From NCBI RefSeq assembly GCF_000143415.4, contig NW_003314268.1, positions 2,000,494 through 2,064,493 of the forward strand: DNA of 64,000 nucleotides. Direction: 5' to 3'. Shown piece by piece: positions 2,948-43,297 of this stretch (position 1 is its first letter; the number at the start of each line of letters is the position of its first letter). The DNA is from Selaginella moellendorffii (taxonomy: Eukaryota; Plantae; Lycopodiophyta). A program made the position numbers and the translations under genes. The notes below the pieces were generated by a model that made no database searches, was not told the DNA's origin, and saw only the letters and a list, made by a program, of their open reading frames with translations.

Positions 2948-4659
2948 CCCCCTGTCCTGGAATCAGAATATTATGCCCCGTCCCGGCATTTGGCACGACC
3001 CTAAAACGCCATAACTAACTGCCTGTAAGGGATTCCACGAACAGCCATTTGAGCTCGGTCATGTCCTTCACGTTGTAATGCGCATTGAAATGGTTTCCTG
3101 GGCGAAGAACTGGCTCGGGAGATATCTGCTGGAAATCTGTGAGTTTCTTCCGGAACAATTGAAACATCCCGGTTTGTCTTGCGATTTCCTCAAGATTTCC
3201 CTCGGCAGCAGCAGCATTTTTGGCGTCGGTCACGCGGCACTGGAAGATTCCGGTTTCCGGCAGGATTTGCGATTAGATCCTATGAAACAGTGAATTTTGT
3301 AAACTCTAGCAGCGAAATGAGACGAAAATGGTTACCACCATGACTTGATTCGCAGGAAGACTCCACTTTGAGCAGAGAGAGAGGTCACCGCGTCCTCACT
3401 GCAACAAAGTTTTTTCATCGTTTTCTATCATCAAACCAAAAAAATCTAGTCCATCTTCGGTGTTCTTGACACCTTGGTAGTTGCTCCAGGCTCCAAACAA
3501 TGGAAACCAGGAACGGGCATACCAGCTGCTAAAAACCAAAAGAGCTCTTACTCGAGGCGAAGAAAAGAGAACAAAAAATTCTTGCACTCGTGATTTAGTA
3601 ATGGCATCGACCCTCGCACAGCTTCAAACTTGTTGTCGGAAGATCTCGATGGCACGGCAAAATTCTCATCGCCAGCTTCCACGCCAAATCGTCCCTGCTG
3701 CTCCCTTAACCCGCTGCTCCACTCATTACTCCAATCCCGATCCCGGGCCCTGCCACGGTCCCCGCCACTTCCGAGGTGCTCGATCTCGCGCTCACATTTT
3801 TAAATTTTCGAATGGGTATAAAACTCTTTTTAGGTGCAATCCAAACGATTGAAATTGTTAATTGTATCATATTTATTTATTTCCCTATTTGTGAGTTTTT
3901 TAGGTTTTATCTATATAATTTACATGTATCATATTTTTTTAACTTATTTTCTTTTATATTTGTTTTATGGGTTTTTACTTTTTATCCATCTAAAAGTTGT
4001 AGTGGAAATTTTTAAAAATTACTTTAGTGATTATAAGCTACCTATCAATGAAAATATATTTAAGGTAATCTTTTTTTTTCCCTCTATATTTGTAATAATG
4101 CAGCATAAAACATTAAAGTTAAGTAAAAAGTAAAGTTAACTAATGATGGATTAAAATCAATTGCTATTTATAGAGCAAAATAGATGAAGTTACCTACAAA
4201 TAATATAAAATAAAAAGAAGCAATAATAAAGATTTATAATTGATTTTTTTTAATGTTTTTTGTTTATGTTTAAAATATGATTCTAAAATAGCTGTGTATT
4301 CATATTAAGTTGTGTAATAGAAAATTAATGTAAGGACACTAAAACGTTGTTATTATTGTAAATTATGCCAATATTGCAAAGATTTATATGATTAAAAATT
4401 TCAATAGAGAAACTTACCAAGAATATTTGTAAGAAAAATGAAAAATAAAGTTAATTATGAATAGCCATTAAATTTTAGATTAAATTTTTTATATACTCTT
4501 AAATGTTACAAGAATAAATAATGAGTTTTAGTTAGAAATCTTTGGTGGTTTTTGAAAATAAAAAACTTTATACATACTTATCGTTTCACTTCTTTTTCAC
4601 CACCATACTCAATTTTTGATATGATATTTGGATTGTCAAACATGGATAATAAATCCATA

Positions 4660-6066: not shown

Positions 6067-6071
6067 TACTT

Positions 6072-7231
6072 TGTAAGGAACCGACTCCCCGAGATGTCGT
6101 AGGCTAAAGGATCCCCAAAAGCTTGACCGAAATGACAAAGAGTTCATCGGATGGGACCAAGTCGAGGATCGAGTCCAAGACCGACTCTAGGACCGAGTTC
6201 GAGATAGGGTCCGGAATCGAGTCCAAGACCGACTCGGGGACCGAGTTCGAGTCCGAGTTCGAGACCGAGTTCGAGACCGAGTTCGAGACGGAGTCCGAGA
6301 TCCGAAATCGGGTCCGAGACCGAGTCCGAGGTCGAGTCCGAGGTCGGATCCGAGATCGGGTCCGAGATCGAGTCCGAGATCGAGTCCGAAACCAAATCCG
6401 AAGTCGGATCCGAAATCGGGTCTGAGATCGAGCCAGAGACTAAGTCCAAATACTAATACGGGTCAAGGGGTGAAAGCCCAAAGCGTGCGTCTCCCAGGGG
6501 GGGGGGGGCTGCAGGGGGTTCCAAAAGTATAGTAGGGATAGTGAGGTCCAGGAACCAGTTTTGAAGGGACTCTCCAGTTGGGCTTCCAAACCGACTTGAG
6601 GTTGAGACTGGGACCGAGGGGCCTTGGGTAGGAGTGAGCATGGACTTGGCTGGTGCCGGAGGGGCCATCCAAGGAAGTGCTCAAGAGCAGCTCCCACTCC
6701 CGAAAGGGAAACCGACTGCGGTGCTCCCGGCTCAGGTGGAGTGGTGCCCCACTTGAGTACCTTGTGGCTCATTGGTCCTTGCCCTTCCGGGGGCTTGGGC
6801 CTTCCCTTCGGGATGGAAGAGGGGGGGTAGAGGTACCCATACTGGGCCGTTAGGCCACGGTGTTTCGCCCCGACGTCCCGAAGCAAGTGTTGCACCCAAG
6901 GCTTGGGATTTAGAGGGTCCCATGATCAAGTCTTGTTGTACCAAGGGGTGTTAGGAATCTGGAGGCTTGGTGTGCTTGGTTGCTTGTGCCTGCGGGGAGT
7001 GTAGCCGAACCTTAAGTCCAGTCTAACCCGGGGAGGGGGATTGGGAGAGATTTGGGAATCCGTAGATGGATGGCTAACACTCCGTTGCTCGTGCAGTAAG
7101 TAGCTGAAACCAAGTAGGAGCTAGTACATAGGCGAGAACCTTGGCGAGGGAACTTAGCACAAGCCAAGGCAGAGTTGGTTGGATAGGCGAGGTAAGCTGG
7201 TAAATTGGAAAGGAAAAATTTGTGGCTTACA
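6072..7231 (+). repeat. 5' LTR (1160 bp)
   Basis: Starts TGTAAG and ends CTTACA. Near-identical to 12465-13625: roughly a dozen substitutions, mostly transitions, plus one extra G, counted by eye. Confidence 0.96.
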
Positions 7232-7234
7232 ATT

Positions 7235-7247
7235 TGGTATCGGAGCC
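7235..7247 (+). promoter_or_regulatory. Primer-binding site (tRNA-iMet type)
   Basis: TGGTATCGGAGCC lies 3 nt after the LTR. It differs from the plant iMet PBS consensus TGGTATCAGAGC by one G:U-compatible change. Confidence 0.9.
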
Positions 7248-7290
7248 TCTTTCTCAGTTCTAGCGAAGGATAGAGGCGGATTGCTGGGAG

Positions 7291-10200
7291 ATGGCAAGGG
7301 CAGGATGTAAGCGAACCCAGGCAGAGACGGAACCTCCTCAAGAGCTGGAGCCTCCGGTCGAAGAGGAGGCGATGGATGAGGAATCCTTGCATGAGGAGGA
7401 CTCCAGTGAGGCAACTTCCAAACAGGAGTCTGGTGGTGAGGTTCGGTCATCCAAGGCTCGATTGGATGTTCTAGAAGGACAATTGGCACAGACCAATGCC
7501 TTGCTAGAGACTCTCGTACGCAAGCTAAAGCATGACGAGAAGCGGAAGAAAAAGCGAAAGACTGCGGATGCTGGCAGCGCAGAAGGTGCGGACCCTTCGG
7601 CAGGGACTGAGGCAAAACTAGACAAGGTCGAATAGACCGAAGTGGAATCAGTCCCTCAGGCAGTTCCCAAGTACAAACCAAAGCCCCCACCCGTCTTCAA
7701 GGGAGTGAACGACTATAAGGTGGTGGAGGATTGGTTTTACAATATGGAGGACTACTTCCGAGCGTTGCGATTACCAAGCTCGGAGAAGGTCCCATGTGCA
7801 AAACCATACTTGGCGGATAATGCCAAGTCTTGGTGGAGAATGACAGAGGCCAACGAAGGACCGGTGGCCACTTGGGAAATGATGAAGGTGAGGATCCGTG
7901 CAACTTACGTTCCTCCGAATGCTACTCTGCATCTAAGGGACAAGCTGAGTAGGCTGAAGCAGACCGGAACCATTCAGGAGTATGTGAATGGGTTTATGGC
8001 AAAGAGGATACTTGTCATGGACATGGGGGATATGGATGCGTTCCATGCCTTCATATCAGGTTTGCAAACCTGGGCTTGCGGCGAAGTAATGCGGTGGAAC
8101 CCGACCAACTACAAAGAAGCGTTGGATGCGGCCATCAAGGTGCATTTCAACGATAACCTGCGAAAGGGGAACACGACGGGGTCGGGATCCACGTTTAGCA
8201 AAGGGGCCAAACCAAGGGGAACGTTTAGCAGAGGGAAATTCAAGAAGAGTTTCTCTAAGAATGAGTCCTCGGGGTTCCGGAAAGGCAGATCCGGTGGGCA
8301 GCGAGCGAGTACGTGGGGGATTCAGGCGAAAAGAGACAAACCCACGGATAAGAAGGTCAAGTCATATAGCAGCGTGGGAAACAACGTATGCTACAACTGC
8401 GGTGAAGCGGGACACTTCTCGAGGGAATGTCCCTACCCGAAGAAGGCCAGAGCCAATATGGCCATCAAGTCGGGTGAAGTCCAAAATGAGGTATATGATC
8501 CAGTCCCTAACTCAAAGTTACTCATTACACGAGCAACTTTGGTAGAGAGTCGTTCGCGACATCTACTAGCCCTCCGAGGGAAGCTCGGAGGTAGATTTGT
8601 TAAGATCCTTATTGACATGGGTGCTTCGGATAATTTTGTGGCTGCAGACATAGTCCGGCAAGCCGGACTAACGGTGCAGCAGCTAGGCGAACCAAGGACT
8701 ATAGAGTTTGTTCAAGGTAGCCAAAGCACCGATGAGGTACTTCGACAAGCGAGAGTCGAAGTGGGGACTTGGAAGGTGGACATGGATTTCACCGTGTTGG
8801 ACATGGCGGGATTTGACATGATCTTCGGAATGGACTGGTTCAATCGATTCGTGGTAGCCCTGCATGGACAAGGTAGAAACCTTGTGGTACTGGCGAATGC
8901 CCAAGGAAGAAGATCTAGGGTGGAGGCCCAAGATCTAAAGGTAGGGCAAAGCAAGGCCAAAGATTCCTGCTTAAACCTGGTGTCCACGAGAGGACAACTC
9001 ACTAAAGGAACTAAGGCGGCCTTTTTGTGCTTACTCTCGGTGAAGAGTGACAAAAAGACAGGAATGGAAGAAGTACCTTTAGTGATCCAGCGGGTGTTGG
9101 ACTAATTCCAGGATACCATGCCGGAGGAGCTACCGGTGGGGCTACCCCCAGCACGACCGATAGAACATAAGATTGAGCTAGTCGAGGGTGCTGAGGCAGT
9201 GGTTCGTCCCCCTTATCGTTTGAACGAAAAAGAACTCAAGGAGCTCAAGTGCCAACTAGAGGAGTTGGTGGACAAAGGGTATGTTAGGTTGAGCAAGTCG
9301 CCGTATGGGGCGCCGGTGTTATTTGTGAAAAAGAAAGATGGATCTATGCGCATGTGCATAGACTACCGGTTGCTCAACAAGTATACAAAGAAGAACAAGT
9401 ACCCTTTGCCAAGGATTGAGGACTTGTTCGATAGGTTGGGAAAGGCAAAATACTTCTCGAGGATTGACCTAAGGTCAGGATACTACCAGATCAGGGTAGC
9501 TGAGGAAGATGTCGAGAAGATAACCTGTCGAACGAGGTATGGAAGCTTTGAGTTTCTGGTGATGCCCTTTGGGCTGTGCAATGCGCCGGCAACGTTTTCA
9601 CATTGATGAACCATATCTTTGTACCCTATCTGGATCACTTCGTGGTCGTCTATATCGACGACATTCTGATCTATAGCGAGACGCTAGAGGAGCATGCCGA
9701 ACACTTGGCGAAGGTGTTTGAGAAACTAAGGGAACACAAGCTGTATGCTAAAGAGAGCAAATGTGACTTTGCTCAACAAGAGGTAAAGTTTCTCGGGCAT
9801 GTGGTGGGCCAGGACGGGCTCAAGGTGGACCCGGAGAAGGTCCAAGCGATCCAGGAATGGGAGCGACCAGCCAATGTACATGAGTTGAGGGCATTCCTGG
9901 GGCTATGCAACTATTATCGAAAGTTTATCAGACACTATTCAAGAGTAGCCCTGCCCTTAACGGACCAAACAGGAAAAGGGAAGATGGTGTGGACAGCGGA
10001 ATGTGAGGCGGCATTCGTCCACCTCAAAGGGAAGTTGAGGAAGGTTCCTGTATTGGCATTACCAGACTTTGGTAAGGACTTTGAGGTAGAAACGGATGCT
10101 TCGGACTTTGCGTTGGGCGCAGTTTTGAAGCAAGACAACCATCCGGTAGCGTTCTTCTCGAAGAAGCTGGACAAGGCTCAACGGAAGTGGCCTGCCCACG

Positions 10201-12061
10201 AGAAGGAATTGTTTGCGGTGGTCAAGGCGCTCAAGGAGTGGCGACACTACCTTGGGAGACACTTCAAGGTTTACACGGACAATGTGGCAACGAAACACTT
10301 CTTGTCACAGCCCGACCTAAGAGGGAAACAAGGTCGGTGGGCCAATGCCTTGGCTGAGTTTGATTGCGAAATTCTGTACAAGCCTGGGAAGAGCAACATC
10401 GTGGCGGATGCGCTAAGTCGAAAAGCGAGCTTGAGGTTGGCAATATCCAGCGCAACAGCAACCTTCTGGGACGATGTGCGGACAGCATATGAGAACGATG
10501 GTCTAGCACAAGAAGTGTTGCTGAGGAATCTTGAGGCGCGGGAAGCTCACCAGAGAGGTGAGCTGCCAACGGAAGAGAAAACGGGCTATGCGGAACGCAA
10601 CGGACTCATTTATTACAAGCAAATGAGGGTGTATGTTCCAGAAGGGGAACTAAGGAAGGTGGCCTTAGAAGAGTGTCATGACGGACCTCTTGCGGGACAC
10701 GGTGGAGTGCCCAAGACGATGGGCTTACTCAAAAGGAAGTACCATTGGCCAGATATGGCTAAGGACGTCCAAGACTATGTAAAGACATGTCCAACATGTC
10801 AGCAGGTAAAAGCCGTGACTAAGGCTAGTGGGGGCTTGTTGCAAAGCATCCCAATTCCAGATCGCCCGTGGAAATGTCTTACGATGGACTTCATCACGGG
10901 ACTCCCCCCAAGCGAGGGGTTTGATGCGATATTCGTGGTGGTGGACCGATTTTCGAAAATGGCACACTTCATACCCACCACAACGGAGGTGGATGCAGAA
11001 GGTGTGGCAAAGCTGTTCTTCGAACAAGTGGTTCGAGTGCGGGGAAGACCGGAAGAGATCATCTCAGATCGAGATAAGATCTTCACCAGTAGGTTCTGGA
11101 GGACTCTCCTGGAACAGTATTGCACCAAGTTGAAATTCAGCATAGCCTACCACCCACAGACAGGTATGGGGTATTGAGTCAAGTTGTGGGAACTAACACT
11201 TCTTGACAGACGGACAAACGGAAAGGGTGAATAGGTAGCTGGAGGATTATTTGCGATGCTATGTCTCGGGAGACCAGACCGATTGGGTAAGTCATTTGGG
11301 ACTTGCGGAGATGTGTTATAACAACTCACCACATTCGAGTATCGGGGTGAGTCCATGGGAAATCATCAATGGGCGAGCTATTGAAGGTCCTGTGGAACTC
11401 GGCGTGGCCGAGTATCATGGAGAGTTGCCCGCAGTGGAGGCATTCACGGCGGAAAGACTCAGCATTTGGAACCTAGTGAGGGATTCCTTGGAACGGGCTC
11501 AACAAAGGCAAACCAAATACGCGAACCAGAAGCGTCGGGATGTAGAGTTCCAAGCTGGGGAGAAGGTGTGGCTGAACACCAAGAACCTCAAACTACCAAG
11601 TGGGATCAGCTGAAAGTTGACCCAAAGGTAAAGATGCATGTATTTCTGTAAATGAATTGATCTTGAGTTCCTTAAGCAGGTTCGCGGGGCCTTACGAGAT
11701 TGAGGCACGAATCGGTAAAGTGGCTTACCGACTCCGACTTCCTCGAGAGATGGGGAAGATGCACCCAGTGTTCCACGTGAACTTACTCAAGCCATACTTT
11801 GAGGATCCGCTTCGCAAGGACCAAGTGAGACCTTTACCTGAGGTTATCCAAGGGGAAGAGGGATACGAAGTCGAGGCCATCCTCAATGCGCGCAAGAGCA
11901 AGCGACAAGGACGCGAGGTGAGAGAGTTCCATGTGAAGTGGAGAGGATTTCCACACTGCGAAGCAACATGGGAACCGGAGGAGAACCTAGCGAACGCTCG
12001 AGATCTAGTGGAGGAATTTCTGCAAGGCAGAACTCTATGTACTTATGCAAAATTCAATTAA
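7291..12061 (+). pseudogene. Gag-Pol polyprotein (Gag, zinc knuckle, protease, RT, RNase H, integrase, chromodomain), disrupted in this copy
   Basis: Motifs: CYNCGEAGHFSREC; LIDMGASDNF; YIDDILI; ETDASDFALG..ADALSR; CHD..H..CPTCQ; MDF/SDRD/TER; GPY; FHVKWRGFPHCEATWEPEENL. In-frame stops at 7633, 9103, 11236 and 11611, a 1-nt frameshift near 9600, and two GT-AG introns (11164-11209, 11628-11679). Confidence 0.93.
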
Positions 12062-12451
12062 AAATATCAATTTGCAAAGTTGAGCAAGTGGCATATGTTG
12101 GGACCCGAAGGCGCGCCAAAGGTAAGCTAATTAGCATGGGTTGGATAGGTCGACCAGGCGTAGGGCACTATGCCCGACTCCCCGCGGGGATGTCGAATCC
12201 GTAGACATATTCTACGGAGGTTGGGTTCGAGTCCCAACCCCCTAGTAAAGCAAGGCTGGGTTCAAGTCCCGACCCCATACTAGGGCGTGGTGAGGTGAGG
12301 AGTATAGGGACACCTATATTCCGTTGTCATGGGCTCTTGGCCGGGGAGGCTAACTTAGGCACACCGCTAAGTGGGGGGATGCCCCCGGAGACATGGTCAA
12401 CAAGTCGTAAGATAAAACGAGACGTTTGATGTGGGCATCGAACTTCTTCTA

Positions 12452-12464
12452 TGGGTGGTGGAGT
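12452..12464 (+). promoter_or_regulatory. Polypurine-tract-like element
   Basis: G-rich TGGGTGGTGGAGT immediately before the 3' LTR. Confidence 0.65.
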
Positions 12465-13625
12465 TGTAAGGAACCGACTCCCCGAGATGTCGTAGGCTAA
12501 AGGATCCCCAAAAGCTTGACCGAAATGACAAAGAGTTCATCGGATGGGACCAAGTCGAGGATCAAGTCCAAGACCGACTCTAGGACCGAGTTCGAGATAG
12601 GGTCCGGAATCGAGTCCAAGACCGACTCGGGGACCGAGTTCGAGTCCGAGTTCGAGACCGAGTTCGAGACCGAGTTCAAGACGGAGTCCGAGATCCGAAA
12701 TCGGGTCTGAGACCGAGTCCGAGGTCGAGTCCGAGGTCGGATCCGAGATCGGGTCCGAGATCGAGTCCGAGATCGAGTCCGAAACCAAATCCGAAGTCGG
12801 ATCCGAAATCGGGTCCGAGATCGAGCCAGAGACTAAGTCCAAATACTAATACGGGTCAAGGGGTGAAAGCCCAAAGCGTGCGTCTCCCAGGGGGGGGGGG
12901 GGCTGCAGGGGGTTCCAAAAGTATAGTAGGGATAGTGAGGTCCAGGAACCAGTTTTGAAGGGACTCTCCAGTTGGGCTTCCAAACCGACTTGAGGTTGAG
13001 ACTGGGACCGAGGGGCCTTGGGTAGGAGTGAGCATGGACTTGGCTGGTGCCGGAGGGGCCATCCAAGGAAGTGCTCAAGAGCAGCTCCCACTCCCGAAAG
13101 GGAAACCGACTGCGGTGCTCCCGGCTCAGGTGGAGTGGTGCCCCACTTGAGTACCTTGTGGCTCATTGGTCCTCACCCTTTCGGGGGCTTGGGCCTTCCC
13201 TTCGGGATGGAAGAGGGGGGGTAGAGGTACCCATACTGGGCCGTTAGGCCACGGTGTTTCGCCCCGACGTCCCGAAGCAAGTGCTGCACCCAAGGCTTGG
13301 GATTTAGAGGGTCCCATGATCAAGTCTTGTAGTACCAAGGGGTGTTAGGAATCTGGAGGCTTGGTGTGCTTGGCTGCTTGTGCCTGCGGGGAGTGTAGCC
13401 AAACCTTAAGTCCAGTCTAACCCGGGGAGGGGGATTGGGAGAGATTTGGGAATCCGTAGATGGATGGCTAACACTCCGTTGCTCGTGCAGTAAGTAGCTA
13501 AAACCAAGTAGGAGCTAGTACATAGGCGAGAACCTTGGCGAGGGAACTTAGCACAAGCCAAGGCAGAGTTGGTTGGATAGGCGAGGTAAGCTGGCAAATT
13601 GGAAAGGAAAAATTTGTGGCTTACA
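12465..13625 (+). repeat. 3' LTR (1161 bp)
   Basis: Copy of the 5' LTR, followed by TSD TACTT. Confidence 0.96.
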
Positions 13626-13630
13626 TACTT

Positions 13631-16325
13631 GTCCATGTGATGAGAATACCAACTCATCTCTAAGTACACCCCCCAACTCCTTGGGTTGTTCCAACATTTA
13701 TTAAAGGTAGCCCCGGCTACCATTTCAAGGACTTGAGTCCTCTTCCGTATTTGACCTCCCACGGTCATTACTTCTGGTCTCACATTCATGAGCACCAACC
13801 TCAATTATATGAGGATAATCTTGTGACTCCTTTATTGCTTTGGAATCTTTATCTTTCCCGTGATCCCAACTATAATTGTTTATCACAACTACATTAGCCC
13901 GTTTGCTGCGTCAAACGCTCATTTGGATCACATCCTCAGCTCTCTGAGGAAACCTTATACTGTTCCCAAGATCCCAAAGTCGTTCCATTATTGGCCCTTT
14001 TCTATCCACCATATTGTGCCCAAGTTCACGCATGAACTTGAGTGGAGGGCCATGTCCTCTCGACATGCTACTCTTCAAGGATAAGGCCACTCCTAGGACC
14101 TTCCGATGCCAACATCAATGGTGATATACTTGAGCGCCAATAAAAGTCGGACTAAGGAACAGCTTTGATGCCAAATTGTAAGTGACTAATTTTTCCATTC
14201 TACTTTAGTCACTTAACCACACCTTTGACCACTTGGAGGAGTCTCATTCATAACATCCTGAAGTCCAATTCAGGACTTGGGACTTGCTAGCCCCGAGGAT
14301 GGCATGTATGCCACTCATCCCTTGCACTTAGTCCAAATGCTCCACATATTCGGTCCCAAGATCGACACCCAAAGGTACCACTGACATATTGGCCCGTTAC
14401 GCTAAGGCCATGCTCATTCACCTTTGCCGCACTAGTGGTCCAATACCACTTGCATCACAATCCCGTCTCTCCAAGACTGGGCCAACCATCCGTGAGTGGT
14501 CATCCAGATCCACTCCTTAGCATCCTTATGATGCTTACCGACAAGGGGAACAGCCTTCCCCAATATCCCTTTATCAGTCCCCACTAGGTCCCTTTTTGCC
14601 CTTGGCCGTGTTTGCCAACACTGCCACTGGATCGAGGCCCACAGGCCTGACCACTAAGTCCCATGGTCCTCTGGGACTTCCTCACCACATGACCGTATCC
14701 TTGGCCACCACACCAAAGGACTGCTCCTTTTCCTTTCCATAGTCTGGGACTTGGGGACAACACTTCAGAACACCATGGCTTTACGCGAGCCACCTAGGTA
14801 CTCTCCCCGCCTTCCGCATTTGGGTGCTCTAGCCATGGGCTTAGAGTGAGGTTCTATTGAGCCATGCTTGGTATCCAAGTAAGTAGTGCCACCCACACTT
14901 GGACTGGGAGCATCGGCCAGTCGATCTCCCGGGGGAACTAGAGCCGGCTCTTGAACACTTCACCAAGCTACCCCGTTTGTCGGTCCGTATTCACTCTAAT
15001 CTTGGACTTCCTAGTGGTCAGTTCATCACCCAACACTGGGTCTGGCCTTCCTGGGCCAAACTGGCCTTTCCTGGCCAAACTGGCTCCACTGCAGTCCTCC
15101 CCCTCACTATACTTTTAACCCCCCAGGGTCTGGGAGACGAATGCTTTGGGCTTTCACCCTCTCAGACTCGGACTCGGCCTCGGACTCGGACTCGGACTCG
15201 GACTCGGACTCGGGCTCGGTCTCGGCCTCTGCCTCGGTCTCGGTCTCGGTCCCGGTCTCGGTCTCGGTCTCGGTCCCGGTCTCAGTCTCGACCTCGGACT
15301 CCATCTCAGGTCCTTCTCGGACTCCATCTCGGATTCCATCTCAGGTCCATCTCGGACTCCATCTCGGACTCTGTCTCGGACTCCATCTCGGACTCCATCT
15401 CAGACTCCGTCTCGGTTCATCTCGGACTCCACTTCAGACTCCATCTCGGACTCCACTTCGGACTCCATCTCGGACTCCACTTCGGACTCCATCTCGGACT
15501 CCACCTCGGACTCCACCTCAGACTCCATCTTGGACTCCGTCTCGGTCCATCTCGGACTCCATCTCGGACTCCACCTCGGACTCCACCTCGGACTCCATCT
15601 CGGACTCCAACTCTAGTCCATCTCGGACACTTCCACGTGTCATGTGTTGGTCCTTTTGGGTCCCTTTTTGGAGTCTCACTTATTGCTTGCTTCGTGCTTG
15701 TTCCTCGAGCACTTTGTCTGGGAGACGAACGCTTTGGGCTTTCACCCTCTCAGACTCGGACTCGGCCTCGGACTCGGACTCGGACTCGGACTTGGGCTCG
15801 GTCTCGGCCTCCGCCTCAGTCTCGGTCTCGGTCCCGGTCTCGGTCTCGACCTCGGACTCCATCTCAGGTCCTTCTCGGACTCCATCTCGGATTCCATCTC
15901 GGGTCCATCTCAGACTCCATCTCGGACTCTGTCTCGGACTCCATCTCGAACTCCATCTCGGACTCCGTCTCGGTTCATCTCGGACTCCATCTCGGACTCC
16001 ACTTCGGACTCCATCTCGGACTCCACTTCGGACTCCATCTTGGACTCCACCTCAGACTCCATCTCGGACTCCGTCTCGGTCCATCTCGGACTCCATCTCA
16101 GACTCCACCTCAGACTCCACTTCAGACTCCATCTCGGACTCCAACTCTGGTCCATCTCAGACTCCATCTCGGACACTTCCACGTGTCATATGTTGGTCCT
16201 TTTGGGTCCCTTTTTAGAGTCTCACTTATTGCTTGCTTCGTGCTTGTTCCTCGAGCACTTTGTTGGGAGTTCCACTCCCGCTCTCGACCTTCCAAGTTGG
16301 AGCTTTTTAGTCCAAATGTGTTACG
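13631..16325 (-). mobile_element. Older related LTR element in the opposite orientation: LTR about 16325-14451, PBS-like TGGTATTGGACC at 14448-14437, decayed internal region
   Basis: Blocks match the reverse complement of the young LTR: GGGAGACG..GCTTTGGGCTTTCACCC at 15132 and 15720, and GGGAGCA..CAGTCG..GCTCTTGA.CACTTC near 14906-14961. It has the same hexamer-type arrays, and its ..TGCA end is followed by a PBS-like motif. Confidence 0.65.
15128..16262. repeat. Tandem duplication (about 588-bp unit) of (CTCGGA)n / (CTCGGACTCCAT)n arrays inside the older LTR
   Basis: Units start GTCTGGGAGACG at 15128 and 15716, and both end ..TTCCTCGAGCACTTTGT. Confidence 0.9.
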
Positions 16326-16920: not shown

Positions 16921-19046
16921 TTAAGTTGTGTAATCAGCATTGATCTTCACATAGTCGTAACTCAAGTCGCAGCCCCACGCAGTGGACCGTCCTTTTCCGC
17001 CACCTGAAACACGGCACCACCTCCGTTGGTCACTCGTCACACAACAGCATCCAGACCGATTGAGATTGTGATGGCAACGACGCCGTGAACTTCTCCAGCC
17101 GCGAGTAAGTAGTCTTTGGCTGCTCCGCTGCATTGCGTCCCTCGGATCAGGTCTGGATAGATACATACAACGGATGACTCACCGGTCAAACTCCAAGGGC
17201 TGCCCCTTCTGCATCAGCACAAAAGTCCCGAGCCGGATTTCCAGCTCCTGAGGGTCGAAGTCAACGCCCGAGTAACCTGCTGCGCATGCTACACGCCCCC
17301 AATTCGGATCCCTTCCATAGACAGCAGCCTAGTTCACACCAACGCTCAAGTGAAAGATAAAAAGAGAAAGTAAAACGCAACCTTGACCAGGGACGATCGA
17401 GCAACTGAACGAGCGACAACAGCTGCAGCATCATCGGAGTGAGCGCCTATGACTTCCACCTACATCAAAGCAGACTGTGAGAAAGGTGCATGCAGCGGAG
17501 CTTACAAACCTCGACAAGACATGTAGCACCTTCCCCATCGGAAGCAATAGACATTGCCAGGCCTTGGAACACCTGTATAGCCATACAAGATACAATGAAT
17601 AGCTTGTCAACACGAACAAAAGGCAGTAACATGCTCACTGCATCCAGTGCGGCTTGGAGTTGCTGTGCATCACGGTCTTGCATATTGTCGAGCAGACGTC
17701 CACGAGAGGCACCGCTGGCTAGTGCTAGGACGGTATCGTTGGTGCTCGTGTCTCCATCCACCTGAGAGTATACGCTCCTTATCTCACTGTTGAAAAGAAT
17801 TGCATACCGTGATCTGGTTGAAGCTCCGGCCAACAGCAGTTTTGACCAGATCTTGCCACACATCCGATGCAACGTGAGCATCGCATGTTACAACCTGCGA
17901 ATAAACTCAAGATTCATTCTTGATAATCAAATAAGGATTACACTAAGCATCGTCGCCATGTTTGGATGGATCATCCCAGATCCTTTCGCCATGCCACCGA
18001 TCTTAACGGTCGTTCCTCCCACCTACAGGACTAGCTTTAGTAAGGCACTCATGCATCTGAAGCCTCACCTCAGTCTCGATGGCAACACTCTTGGTAACAA
18101 GATCGGTGGTGGTGATCGCAGTTGCAGCAGCATCACCACTTCCATGGTCCGATGAGAAGAAAAGAAAACAAAAGAGAAAACGTGCACACCTGTCAGCAGT
18201 GTAAGAAAGTGCTCCCACCAGCCGAGGAAGAGACGCTAATAGAGCATCCTAGAAATAATCGGTCAAATGATTATGAATTTCCAAAGCAGACCATGCGGCC
18301 TTACCTTCTTGATGCGTTTGCCAATTACACCGGTGGACTGGAGAAGAACACGTTCCGGTTGAGTGCCGAGGAGCTACAGAAACGAATAACTAAAGTCCCG
18401 CGCAGGAGCAAGCGTCGTCTACCTTTGCAACAGCAGTTGCGCAGTCGAGGGCGTCTTGGTAACCTGCATCACCCTGATCAAAGCCGTCAGTGACGCGTGC
18501 ATGCATGGAGAAACGTGCTCACAGTTGCAGCATTCGCTTGACCCGCATTGATAAGAACTGCACGCGCCTGGATACACACCAAAACTTTACCAGTAACAAA
18601 GCGGAGAATCGTGCCAACCTTGGTTGAGGCCGCCAGAATGCGCTTGCAGTACAAGACGGGCGCAGCAGCCACGACGTTTGTTGTGAAGGTTCCTGCGTGT
18701 GCCATGTAAGAAGAAGACACAAAGGGCAAGGAGGAAAAGAAGCGACCCACCGGCACAGACGGCGTCCACATCCGAGACAACCAGGGCGAGGTCTGGTTTG
18801 GTGCCAAGTGCTCTTAGTCCGCCATACAAGCCAGCAGCCCGAAAGCCGCAAGGTCCAGTGACACCGCCTGGAATCTAGAGACTCCCAAGTGCGAGTAAGC
18901 AAACAAGAATAACTTACCTGCGTCCAAGGGCCTCGGGGGAGCCGAATGTGAGCTGCAGGAAGCGCGATCGTCTCCCCGCTGGTAACAACCTCGTTGTGTA
19001 ACGACGACGCCTTGGCACCCATTGTCAGCATTGCTCCCCCCGCCAT
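16921..19046 (-). CDS. argJ: Ornithine acetyltransferase / glutamate N-acetyltransferase ArgJ, plastid, multi-exon
   Basis: Motifs [52 protein letters not shown] and DGEGATCL. C-terminus [19 protein letters not shown]. Confidence 0.96.
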
Positions 19047-41650: not shown

Positions 41651-43297
41651 CTACTCCGCGCGCTGCTGCTCATCCCCGCCAACGCTGCCTTGCTCCGCTG
41701 CTGCCGATGTTGAAGCCGATGCCGGAGACGCCTCCGCGATCTCGTGGAGAGGCAGCGCCGGCGTGTGGCCCTGGAACAAACTGATATGCCCCAGCAGCTT
41801 GTCCTTCCGGGAGAAGGTGGTGCCACACGAGCACTGCCACTTATCCCGGCCGCAGTGCTTCTCGTGCGTCTTGAGGTCCGCCACCACCGAGAACTTTTTG
41901 CTCTTGCACTTGCTGCAGGTGAGAGACTTTGGACAGTGGCTCCGCCGGTAGTGATTCTTGACGCACAGCACCGTCTTGAGCGGCTGGAACTTGCGGTGCT
42001 TCTTGTTCCTCTTGCATCCGGCGTACGGGCACGAGTAGCGCCTGGGCCGGAGCAGCGATGGATCCGTGGCAACCTTATCCGGCCTCGCCAGAGCAGCGGG
42101 CGACTTGTACTGCTCGCCGTGCCCGCGCATGTGCATTCTCAGGTTGGCGTCCCGCTTGAAACCTTTGCCACACTTGTCACAAAAGTGCGTGTGCTCCGCG
42201 AGGATCTCCACTGCGTTCATTTCCACGAGATCGTAGGAGCCAGGCACAAGGTCCTCCGCGTCGCCGTCGTCGTCGTCGTCCCTGGACCCCGCCCCTGAGT
42301 CGCCGCAATCTTCCATCGCCGCCGGCGGGGGTGGTGGAGGTGGAGGTGGTGCTGCCGCTGCTGGGGGCGCCGCTGCCTCACTTTCTCTCTCCGCCACCAC
42401 CACGGCCTTGCTCGCAAGTGGTGGATGATGGATGGCTTCCAGGTTGAAAGCGTGGGGCTGACAGGGCGAATCTTGCTGCTGCGGCGCCTGGGGCTGCTGC
42501 GGTTGCGGCTGCTGCTGGCGATGCTCCACCACCGGAAGTGGATTCCGGACGGCCGCGGCGGGAGTGGGAGCGGCCAGGGTGTTGAAGCCGAGTGGAGCAC
42601 CCAATTGCATGTCGGGCAGCAGGCACGGCGAGGGCTGCGCGTTGGGAAGGACCCCAATGACGGCGAGAGCAAGCTGCGATATGTTGGAAGCGATCCGCGC
42701 GGCAGTCATGGCTGCATGGGCCTGGACGACACCGCCGTTGTGCTGGCTGGCCTGCGATAGCGAGTGAACCAGCGCCTGGAGCTGATCGGTCTTTTGCTCC
42801 AGTAGGGAGACAAGGGTGTAGTGCTGCTGCTGCTGGGGGTGGATGCCGCCACCACCACGGCCTTCTATTGGCGGGCTCCCGGGGGGACTGAGCTTGATCA
42901 GGTCTTCCATGAGGCCCTGGAGGACCTGCTGAGGGGCGGCGAGCTGGAGATTGTAGCCCTGCTGGCCGGCGGTGAGGAGGAAGCCCTGGTGGAGGAGATT
43001 CTGGAAGGCGTTTTGGGGAGCGGGCATCTGGTGGTGGAAATGCGGTTGATGCTGCGGCAGCGGCGGGGGCGGAGGCTGCTGGTGGTGGTGGTGGTGGTGA
43101 TGGTGAGCCGGCGGCGGAGGGGCCTGGGGTTCTAGAGCTCCCAGAATGGAGAATCCATGGCAGGTTGCCGCGGCCGCGGGGGATGCGTAGTGGCCAACAA
43201 GGGAGAGCTTTGGTGTCATACCTCCTCCTCCTCCTCTCGGGCTCTGCTGCTGCTGATGGACATCGCTCGGCGACGGCTGGTGGCTGGATTGCATCAT
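41651..43297 (-). CDS. STOP1: STOP1-like C2H2 zinc-finger transcription factor, intronless
   Basis: [66 protein letters not shown]. Confidence 0.95.

Follow-up and report, generated by a model that had tools for sequence, protein, structure and literature searches.

The 64-kb window analysed here (the whole stretch taken from contig NW_003314268.1 of Selaginella moellendorffii; all coordinates are positions in it) contains a long terminal repeat (LTR) retrotransposon on the plus strand, at 6072-13625, with two short intron-like inserts (I1 and I2) in its integrase region. The element is a Ty3/gypsy chromovirus, since its domains follow the Ty3/gypsy order and a chromodomain lies at the C-terminus. 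The 5' LTR (6072-7231, 1160 nt) and the 3' LTR (12465-13625, 1161 nt), both with TG..CA termini, are 98.8% identical, and the same five bases, TACTT, are found directly outside both of them (6067-6071 and 13626-13630). The intact target site duplication (TSD) and the ~99% LTR identity of the original prediction are thus confirmed. The LTRs differ by 13 substitutions, of which 12 are transitions, several at CpG or CCG (divergence ~1.1%), and by a single indel of one G in a poly-G tract (6497-6507 vs 12890-12902). At the rice rate of 1.3e-8 substitutions per site per year this divergence corresponds to ~0.4 Myr. The U3 part of each LTR contains ~27 units of a 12-nt minisatellite (6148-6474 and 12541-12870).

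The 5' LTR is adjoined by a primer binding site (PBS)-like sequence, TGGTATCGGAGCC (7235-7247), which we take to resemble, with one mismatch, the complement of the 3' end of plant initiator tRNA-Met. Along 7291-12058 the Pfam matches are found in the order gag, CCHC, protease, reverse transcriptase, RNase H, H2C2, integrase core, SH3 and chromodomain. The gag region (7291-8480) includes a Retrotrans_gag match (7807-8067, PF03732, 2e-12) and a CCHC zinc knuckle (8383-8433, PF00098, 1e-7). It is followed by the aspartic protease (8599-8886, RVP_2, 5.9e-14), the reverse transcriptase (9325-9803, RVT_1, split over two frames), RNase H (10066-10361, RT_RNaseH, 3.7e-32) and the H2C2 zinc-binding domain of the integrase (10647-10814, 1.2e-21). 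The first part of the catalytic core (10860-11163, rve, 3.3e-11) ends with ...AYHPQT and the first base of a D codon. The middle integrase exon, delimited by homologue alignment, runs from DGQTERVN... to ...KLTQ (11210-11627), and the C-terminus (11680-12061) carries a Tf2-type SH3 domain split by I2 (SH3_Tf2-1, 2.7e-15) and the chromodomain (11864-12022, Chromo, 1.6e-16). The natural stop of gag-pol is at 12059-12061. A polypurine-like tract, GGGTGGTGGAG (12453-12463), lies one base before the 3' LTR and would serve as the polypurine tract (PPT).

In the 3' untranslated part (12200-12290) two motifs similar to tRNA T-arms are present, GGTTCGAGTCCCAACC and GGTTCAAGTCCCGACC. ARAGORN and Rfam detected no tRNA in this interval and no tRNA gene in the window, and no RNA families or tRNAs were found in or around the element.

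The two inserts in the integrase region

LTR retrotransposons pass through RNA in each generation, so that introns in their coding domains should be erased. I1 (11164-11209, 46 nt, GTATGG...CTAAC...ACAG, phase 1) lies on the plus strand between ...AYHPQT and DGQTERVN..., just upstream of the glutamate that completes the catalytic D,D-35-E triad. I2 (11628-11679, 52 nt, GTAAAG...GCAG, phase 2), on the same strand, lies between ...KLTQR and FAGPYEIE..., within the SH3-like domain, and the SH3_Tf2-1 match downstream of it covers profile positions 24-63 only.

The borders of both inserts were set by tblastn with six intronless homologues, all of which are continuous at the two sites. The high-scoring segment pairs (HSPs) end at 11162 and restart at ~11206-11210, end again near 11595 and restart at ~11678-11681; across both inserts they are colinear, with contiguous query residues. 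Excision of the inserts rejoins HPQT|DGQTERVN and KLTQR|FAGPY exactly as in the intronless relatives. In the original prediction the pol region was described as broken by several AT-richer GT..AG inserts, the removal of which restores conserved motifs precisely. The precise restoration is upheld by the HSPs and by the closest relative described below, which is continuous at both sites. The sizes of 46 and 52 nt and the GT..AG borders also stand, except that I2 had been placed one nucleotide off, and the count of introns is two. With respect to composition, the description holds for I2 (GC 0.33), as no 52-nt segment of the whole coding region is richer in AT (0 of 4517 coding windows reach so low a GC content; exon GC is 0.51), but not for I1, the GC content of which (0.43) is taken up again below.

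A scan of the whole window for frame-bridging GT..AG segments returned 6580 candidates. Since GT..AG ends combined with rescue of the frame are so cheap, the argument must rest on the borders fixed by homology. These allow six equivalent placements for I1 and five for I2; the chance of finding GT..AG among them is ~6/256 and ~5/256, respectively, or ~5e-4 jointly. At both insertion points the joined exons read AG|R (CAG|A and AAG|G). A branch-point-like YTRAY motif is present in each of them (CTAAC at -17 in I1 and TTGAT at -23 in I2), although it is weakly diagnostic, being found in only 6 of 14 host introns.

The 14 host introns (13 in the ArgJ gene and one in NifU) were delimited by joining open reading frame (ORF) pieces through protein continuity rather than from RNA; they are 46-66 nt long, with a median of 51 nt and a mean GC content of 0.46. 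Their donors follow a loose GTRNG pattern and their acceptors are YAG, and the ends of I1 and I2 are similar. Both inserts fall squarely within the length distribution of the host introns of the window, in agreement with the earlier claim that they match neighbouring introns in size. The ArgJ gene itself (17128-18750, minus strand) has at least 14 exons, separated by introns of 46-66 nt, and is an example of how short the introns of this genome typically are. Taken with the homology-fixed borders, these features indicate that the inserts are very probably genuine host-type spliceosomal introns.

No significant similarity was found between I1 or I2 and the flanking exons, between the two inserts, or between them and the rest of the 64-kb window or the fetched loci. 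The inserts are accordingly not tandem duplications of their surroundings, and the window offers no donor for them. Introner-like introns occur as many near-identical genomic copies, often with terminal repeats or a TSD; within the window and the fetched loci neither insert has such a copy, and the two are unlike each other.

The inserts could also have been gained at the DNA level in this very copy after its insertion, for instance as filler DNA at repaired breaks, or they could be intron look-alikes that were never spliced. Short repeats such as those present at the inserts (GACAG at the end of the upstream exon and again at that of I1, and AGGT at each I2 border) occur at repair-mediated gains, and the copy is decaying in any case. 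Most of these repeats, however, are the splice consensus itself and carry little information. Neither insert duplicates its flanks, both have the length of the host intron mode, and the joint chance of their GT..AG ends is low. Moreover, two precise gains would be needed within ~500 nt of a silent, decaying copy and within ~1% of LTR divergence, with none elsewhere in 7.5 kb. A post-insertion gain is for these reasons implausible, as the original prediction had argued, and we regard this explanation as highly improbable. The inserts very probably predate this insertion.

Relatives, copy number and the sister scaffold

The closest relative found is an ENA metagenome contig (L032) with 56% amino acid identity over the reverse transcriptase, RNase H and integrase and 71% in the reverse transcriptase; its integrase is open across both insert sites. 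The gag-pol frame of this contig is broken once, by an in-frame TGA (~4011-4013) in the integrase zinc-finger region. The intronless chromoviruses (L032, elements of Haematococcus lacustris and metagenomic relatives) share with the Selaginella element the domain order gag-CCHC, protease, reverse transcriptase, RNase H, integrase, SH3 and chromodomain, at 45-56% amino acid identity. Unlike that element, L032, the six homologues and the Haematococcus copy are continuous at the I1 site and, with the exception of the Haematococcus copy, also at the I2 site. As a control, metagenome contigs were scanned with a 20-mer reaching up to the I1 site. It occurs in 24 gypsy loci, and in all of them the DGQTE codons come immediately after it; these loci represent unrelated elements, not siblings. 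Because all these sequences are continuous at the I1 site, the introns are, as judged from the relatives, derived: a feature of the Selaginella lineage or of a part of it.

Two candidate intron carriers were rejected. A relative of 51% identity (P0001/P0305), the ORF of which diverges at the I1 motif, has an integrase truncated there and no intron. In the gene model of the Haematococcus relative (P0173) a small intron is placed near the N-terminus only, and the integrase is continuous, including the I1 site. Three metagenomic ORFs with ~50% identity to the query (P0022, P0026 and P0027) break off after an identical ...VVVD in the integrase core, which suggests a stop inherited within their family.

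Sibling copies were sought in protein, metagenome and viral collections. A 519-residue query spanning reverse transcriptase, RNase H and integrase gave a best match of 52% over the full span (56% over a part) in the protein collections and no match from Selaginella, and the 124-residue exon between the introns matched nothing in them. An exhaustive search of representative proteins reached 50% identity at best, the top clusters being from Haematococcus and from metagenome or Logan contigs; no protein in the searched collections exceeds 56% identity at any length. Among the viral contigs only relatives at 36-38% identity were detected, and the 20-mer scan of the metagenome contigs yielded no sibling besides the 24 unrelated gypsy elements.

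A sister scaffold (GL377601.1), reached via the neighbouring KH/RING gene, carries genes 96.6% identical to those of the window. In place of the window segment 3797-14176 (10.4 kb, comprising the element together with the adjacent flanks), this scaffold has 5.5 kb of unrelated sequence (L001 3582-9133), so that the haplotype or paralogous segment which it represents does not carry the element. Such an absence fits a recent insertion; the immediate flanks are missing too, so that no clean empty site is available. No terminal repeats are present in the AT-rich flanks that are specific to the window (GC 0.36 and 0.44), and a piece of ~370 nt (window 4248-4619) is inverted on the sister scaffold.

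Just downstream of the element, an array of two ~550-nt units (15130-16260) shows ~70% identity to the LTR minisatellite, on the opposite strand. It is also present on the sister scaffold (L001 1766-3581, 82-84% identity) and is for this reason older than the insertion; it may be the remnant of a related LTR. The other genes of the window are of plant type (photolyase, GRDP, a Pumilio-type NABP protein, ArgJ, NifU, L11 and cystatin). A single-exon ORF on the minus strand (41654-43297) matches an NCBI protein exactly and has a 90%-cluster partner named STOP1-like of Selaginella moellendorffii.

Origin and coding consequences of the introns

The explanation that we favour, with somewhat more confidence than doubt, is that the locus holds a hemizygous, recent and decayed chromovirus copy with two U2-type host introns in its integrase, which would have been inherited from an unspliced RNA template. 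The introns would then have been present in the RNA that was reverse-transcribed, and the element would stem from an intron-bearing lineage. We infer from the sequence that the inserts would be removed from RNA, that they arose before the insertion and that other copies would carry them.

If I1 is retained, translation ends at a TGA (11175-11177) four codons into the insert, before the catalytic glutamate. If I1 is removed and I2 retained, it ends at a TAA (11629-11631), before the SH3-like domain and the chromodomain. Unspliced RNA would thus be expected to encode Gag, protease, reverse transcriptase and RNase H together with an integrase that has no catalytic glutamate, SH3-like domain or chromodomain. 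As either retained intron brings a stop, full-length integrase would be made from doubly spliced mRNA only.

This arrangement could constitute an adaptive splicing gate common to the whole family, in which unspliced RNA serves as the packaged genome and as the mRNA for Gag, protease, reverse transcriptase and RNase H, while a minority of doubly spliced RNA sets the dose of integrase, as an Ogre-like strategy moved into the integrase. The stop in I1 would make integrase activity strictly dependent on splicing. Another control of dose would also be useful to the element, as gag and pol are in a single frame with no frameshift site, and Ogre offers a precedent for such a strategy in plants (PMC6317226, PMC4408406). 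Against this stand the nearest relatives, in which these introns are missing, the lack of a sibling copy in the searched collections, and the state of this copy, which is defective, possibly like its parent. Neither intron removes a packaging signal, so that spliced RNA would also be copied and the trait would be unstable. The exact restoration of motifs is expected of any recently acquired intron and is not evidence of selection for a gate. We consider a family-wide gate unlikely; splicing may act as a regulated gate or be no more than a tolerated burden.

Several findings weigh against the favoured explanation, that of a recent copy with inherited host introns. The GC content of I1 lies only at the 15th percentile of the coding windows, and the host introns used for comparison were themselves placed through protein continuity. 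Only a single copy is seen, with no sibling in the searched protein, metagenome or viral collections. The putative PBS and PPT and both LTR ends with the terminal repeats (R) would all be kept in spliced RNA, so that packaging of this RNA and erasure of the introns within a few cycles are to be expected unless something prevents them. Besides the inserts, the copy bears four premature stops and one frameshift. An in-frame TAG (7633-7635) interrupts the gag region, an in-frame TAA (9103-9105) lies between the protease and the reverse transcriptase, and a TAG (11236-11238) and a TGA (11611-11613) are both located in the middle integrase exon; a 1-nt frameshift is found in the reverse transcriptase near 9597-9603, where the tblastn HSPs switch frame (9597/9600). 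With no uninterrupted gag-pol frame the element is not autonomous. The original prediction had taken it for a young element, with no mention of lesions, and had proposed a splicing-gated system; this copy is dead and could not run one.

The number of premature stops also exceeds the expectation. From the per-copy transition rate of the LTRs and the number of codons one transition away from a stop, 1.28 stops are expected since insertion, as compared with 4 observed (Poisson P ~0.04). The excess hints that some of the damage was inherited, and weakly suggests that a defective element, mobilised in trans, may already have been the source of the parent RNA, in which case the parental integrase reading frame would not have mattered.

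A non-autonomous parent would suit yet another origin, in which the introns are neutral hitchhikers: one or a few cycles earlier, host intron lariats would have been reverse-spliced into the genomic RNA of the element and then made permanent when the element reverse-transcribed it, at no cost in integrase to a lineage possibly mobilised in trans. The AG|R junctions of I1 and I2 fit the protosplice pattern, restoration of the motifs upon removal would be automatic, and both the intronless relatives and the excess of stops, with the defective parent that it suggests, agree with such a capture. It would, however, require two independent events in one lineage, no donor intron was found in the window or the fetched loci, and we know of no in vivo demonstration that spliceosomal introns reverse-splice into foreign RNA. 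This origin appears to us somewhat less probable again than the splicing gate.

Should the introns be real in so young a copy, the lineage to which the element belongs would either evade splicing of the genomic RNA or keep it under control, and the dose of integrase would then be set in a novel manner. Alternatively, the RNA of a retroelement would be able to take up spliceosomal introns that are afterwards copied into DNA. This would be relevant to the reverse-splicing model of intron gain, a subject of long debate, and an entry by this route would be a natural demonstration of that model. A combination of both, in which a Selaginella chromovirus lineage stably holds introns in its integrase core, replicates from unspliced RNA and depends entirely on doubly spliced mRNA for active integrase, the introns having perhaps entered by reverse splicing and been fixed by its own reverse transcriptase, must be regarded as doubtful, on a par with the gate. 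If no copy other than this dead one has the inserts, the finding would be little more than a curiosity.

Comparison with known spliced retroelements

In the searched literature (incomplete in coverage, and not including Repbase notes) no report of host-type introns in a chromovirus integrase was found, either for Selaginella or elsewhere. The retained introns described there are those of Ogre and, among non-LTR-type retroelements, those of Penelope-like elements. As stated in the original prediction, the known plant cases of splicing are organised differently, with the Ogre intron situated between protease and reverse transcriptase and the copia transcripts spliced to a subgenomic Gag RNA (PMC6317226, PMC4408406, PMC5580714).

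In Ty1/copia elements (BARE, the copia elements of Arabidopsis and Drosophila copia) the cited passages describe transcript splicing that balances the protein products via a subgenomic Gag RNA (PMC3735527, PMC5580714). What is spliced out as an "intron" in these elements is the coding region of pol, so that a Gag-only mRNA is left, and no additional non-coding sequence breaks a domain. A segment recognised by the spliceosome is also known from a Ty3/gypsy element, the Tf2 of fission yeast (PMC7175516), in which the intron is cryptic and is tied to RNAi and heterochromatin targeting; the review does not describe it as an extra sequence breaking a conserved domain.

Penelope-like elements retrotranspose without loss of their spliceosomal introns (PMC8557442, citing Arkhipova et al. 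2003). According to the cited text, they use target-primed reverse transcription and a GIY-YIG nuclease, and the retention of introns is ascribed to that mechanism. The Selaginella element, in contrast, has LTRs, an integrase and sequences resembling a PBS and a PPT.

The nearest parallel is Ogre, of the Tat lineage of Ty3/gypsy elements in legumes. As the cited passages describe it, its polyprotein ORF contains a spliceosomal intron that is kept in the genomic copies and spliced from part of the transcripts, and reverse transcriptase, RNase H and integrase depend on the removal of this one intron between protease and reverse transcriptase (PMC6317226, PMC4408406). Both are LTR retrotransposons with the polyprotein ORF interrupted by an intron and with downstream pol domains that depend, or in our case would depend, on splicing. 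The Ogre elements, on the other hand, are described as very large non-chromoviruses in which a single intron occupies a region of ~274 bp on average between two ORFs, and their splicing was shown experimentally. In the Selaginella element, a chromovirus of 7.5 kb with a chromodomain, protease and reverse transcriptase are in one frame and the predicted introns, of 46 and 52 nt, lie inside the integrase, in its core and its SH3 domain. Intron-containing LTR retrotransposons are thus already known, and it is the position, number and size of the introns that set this element apart from Ogre.

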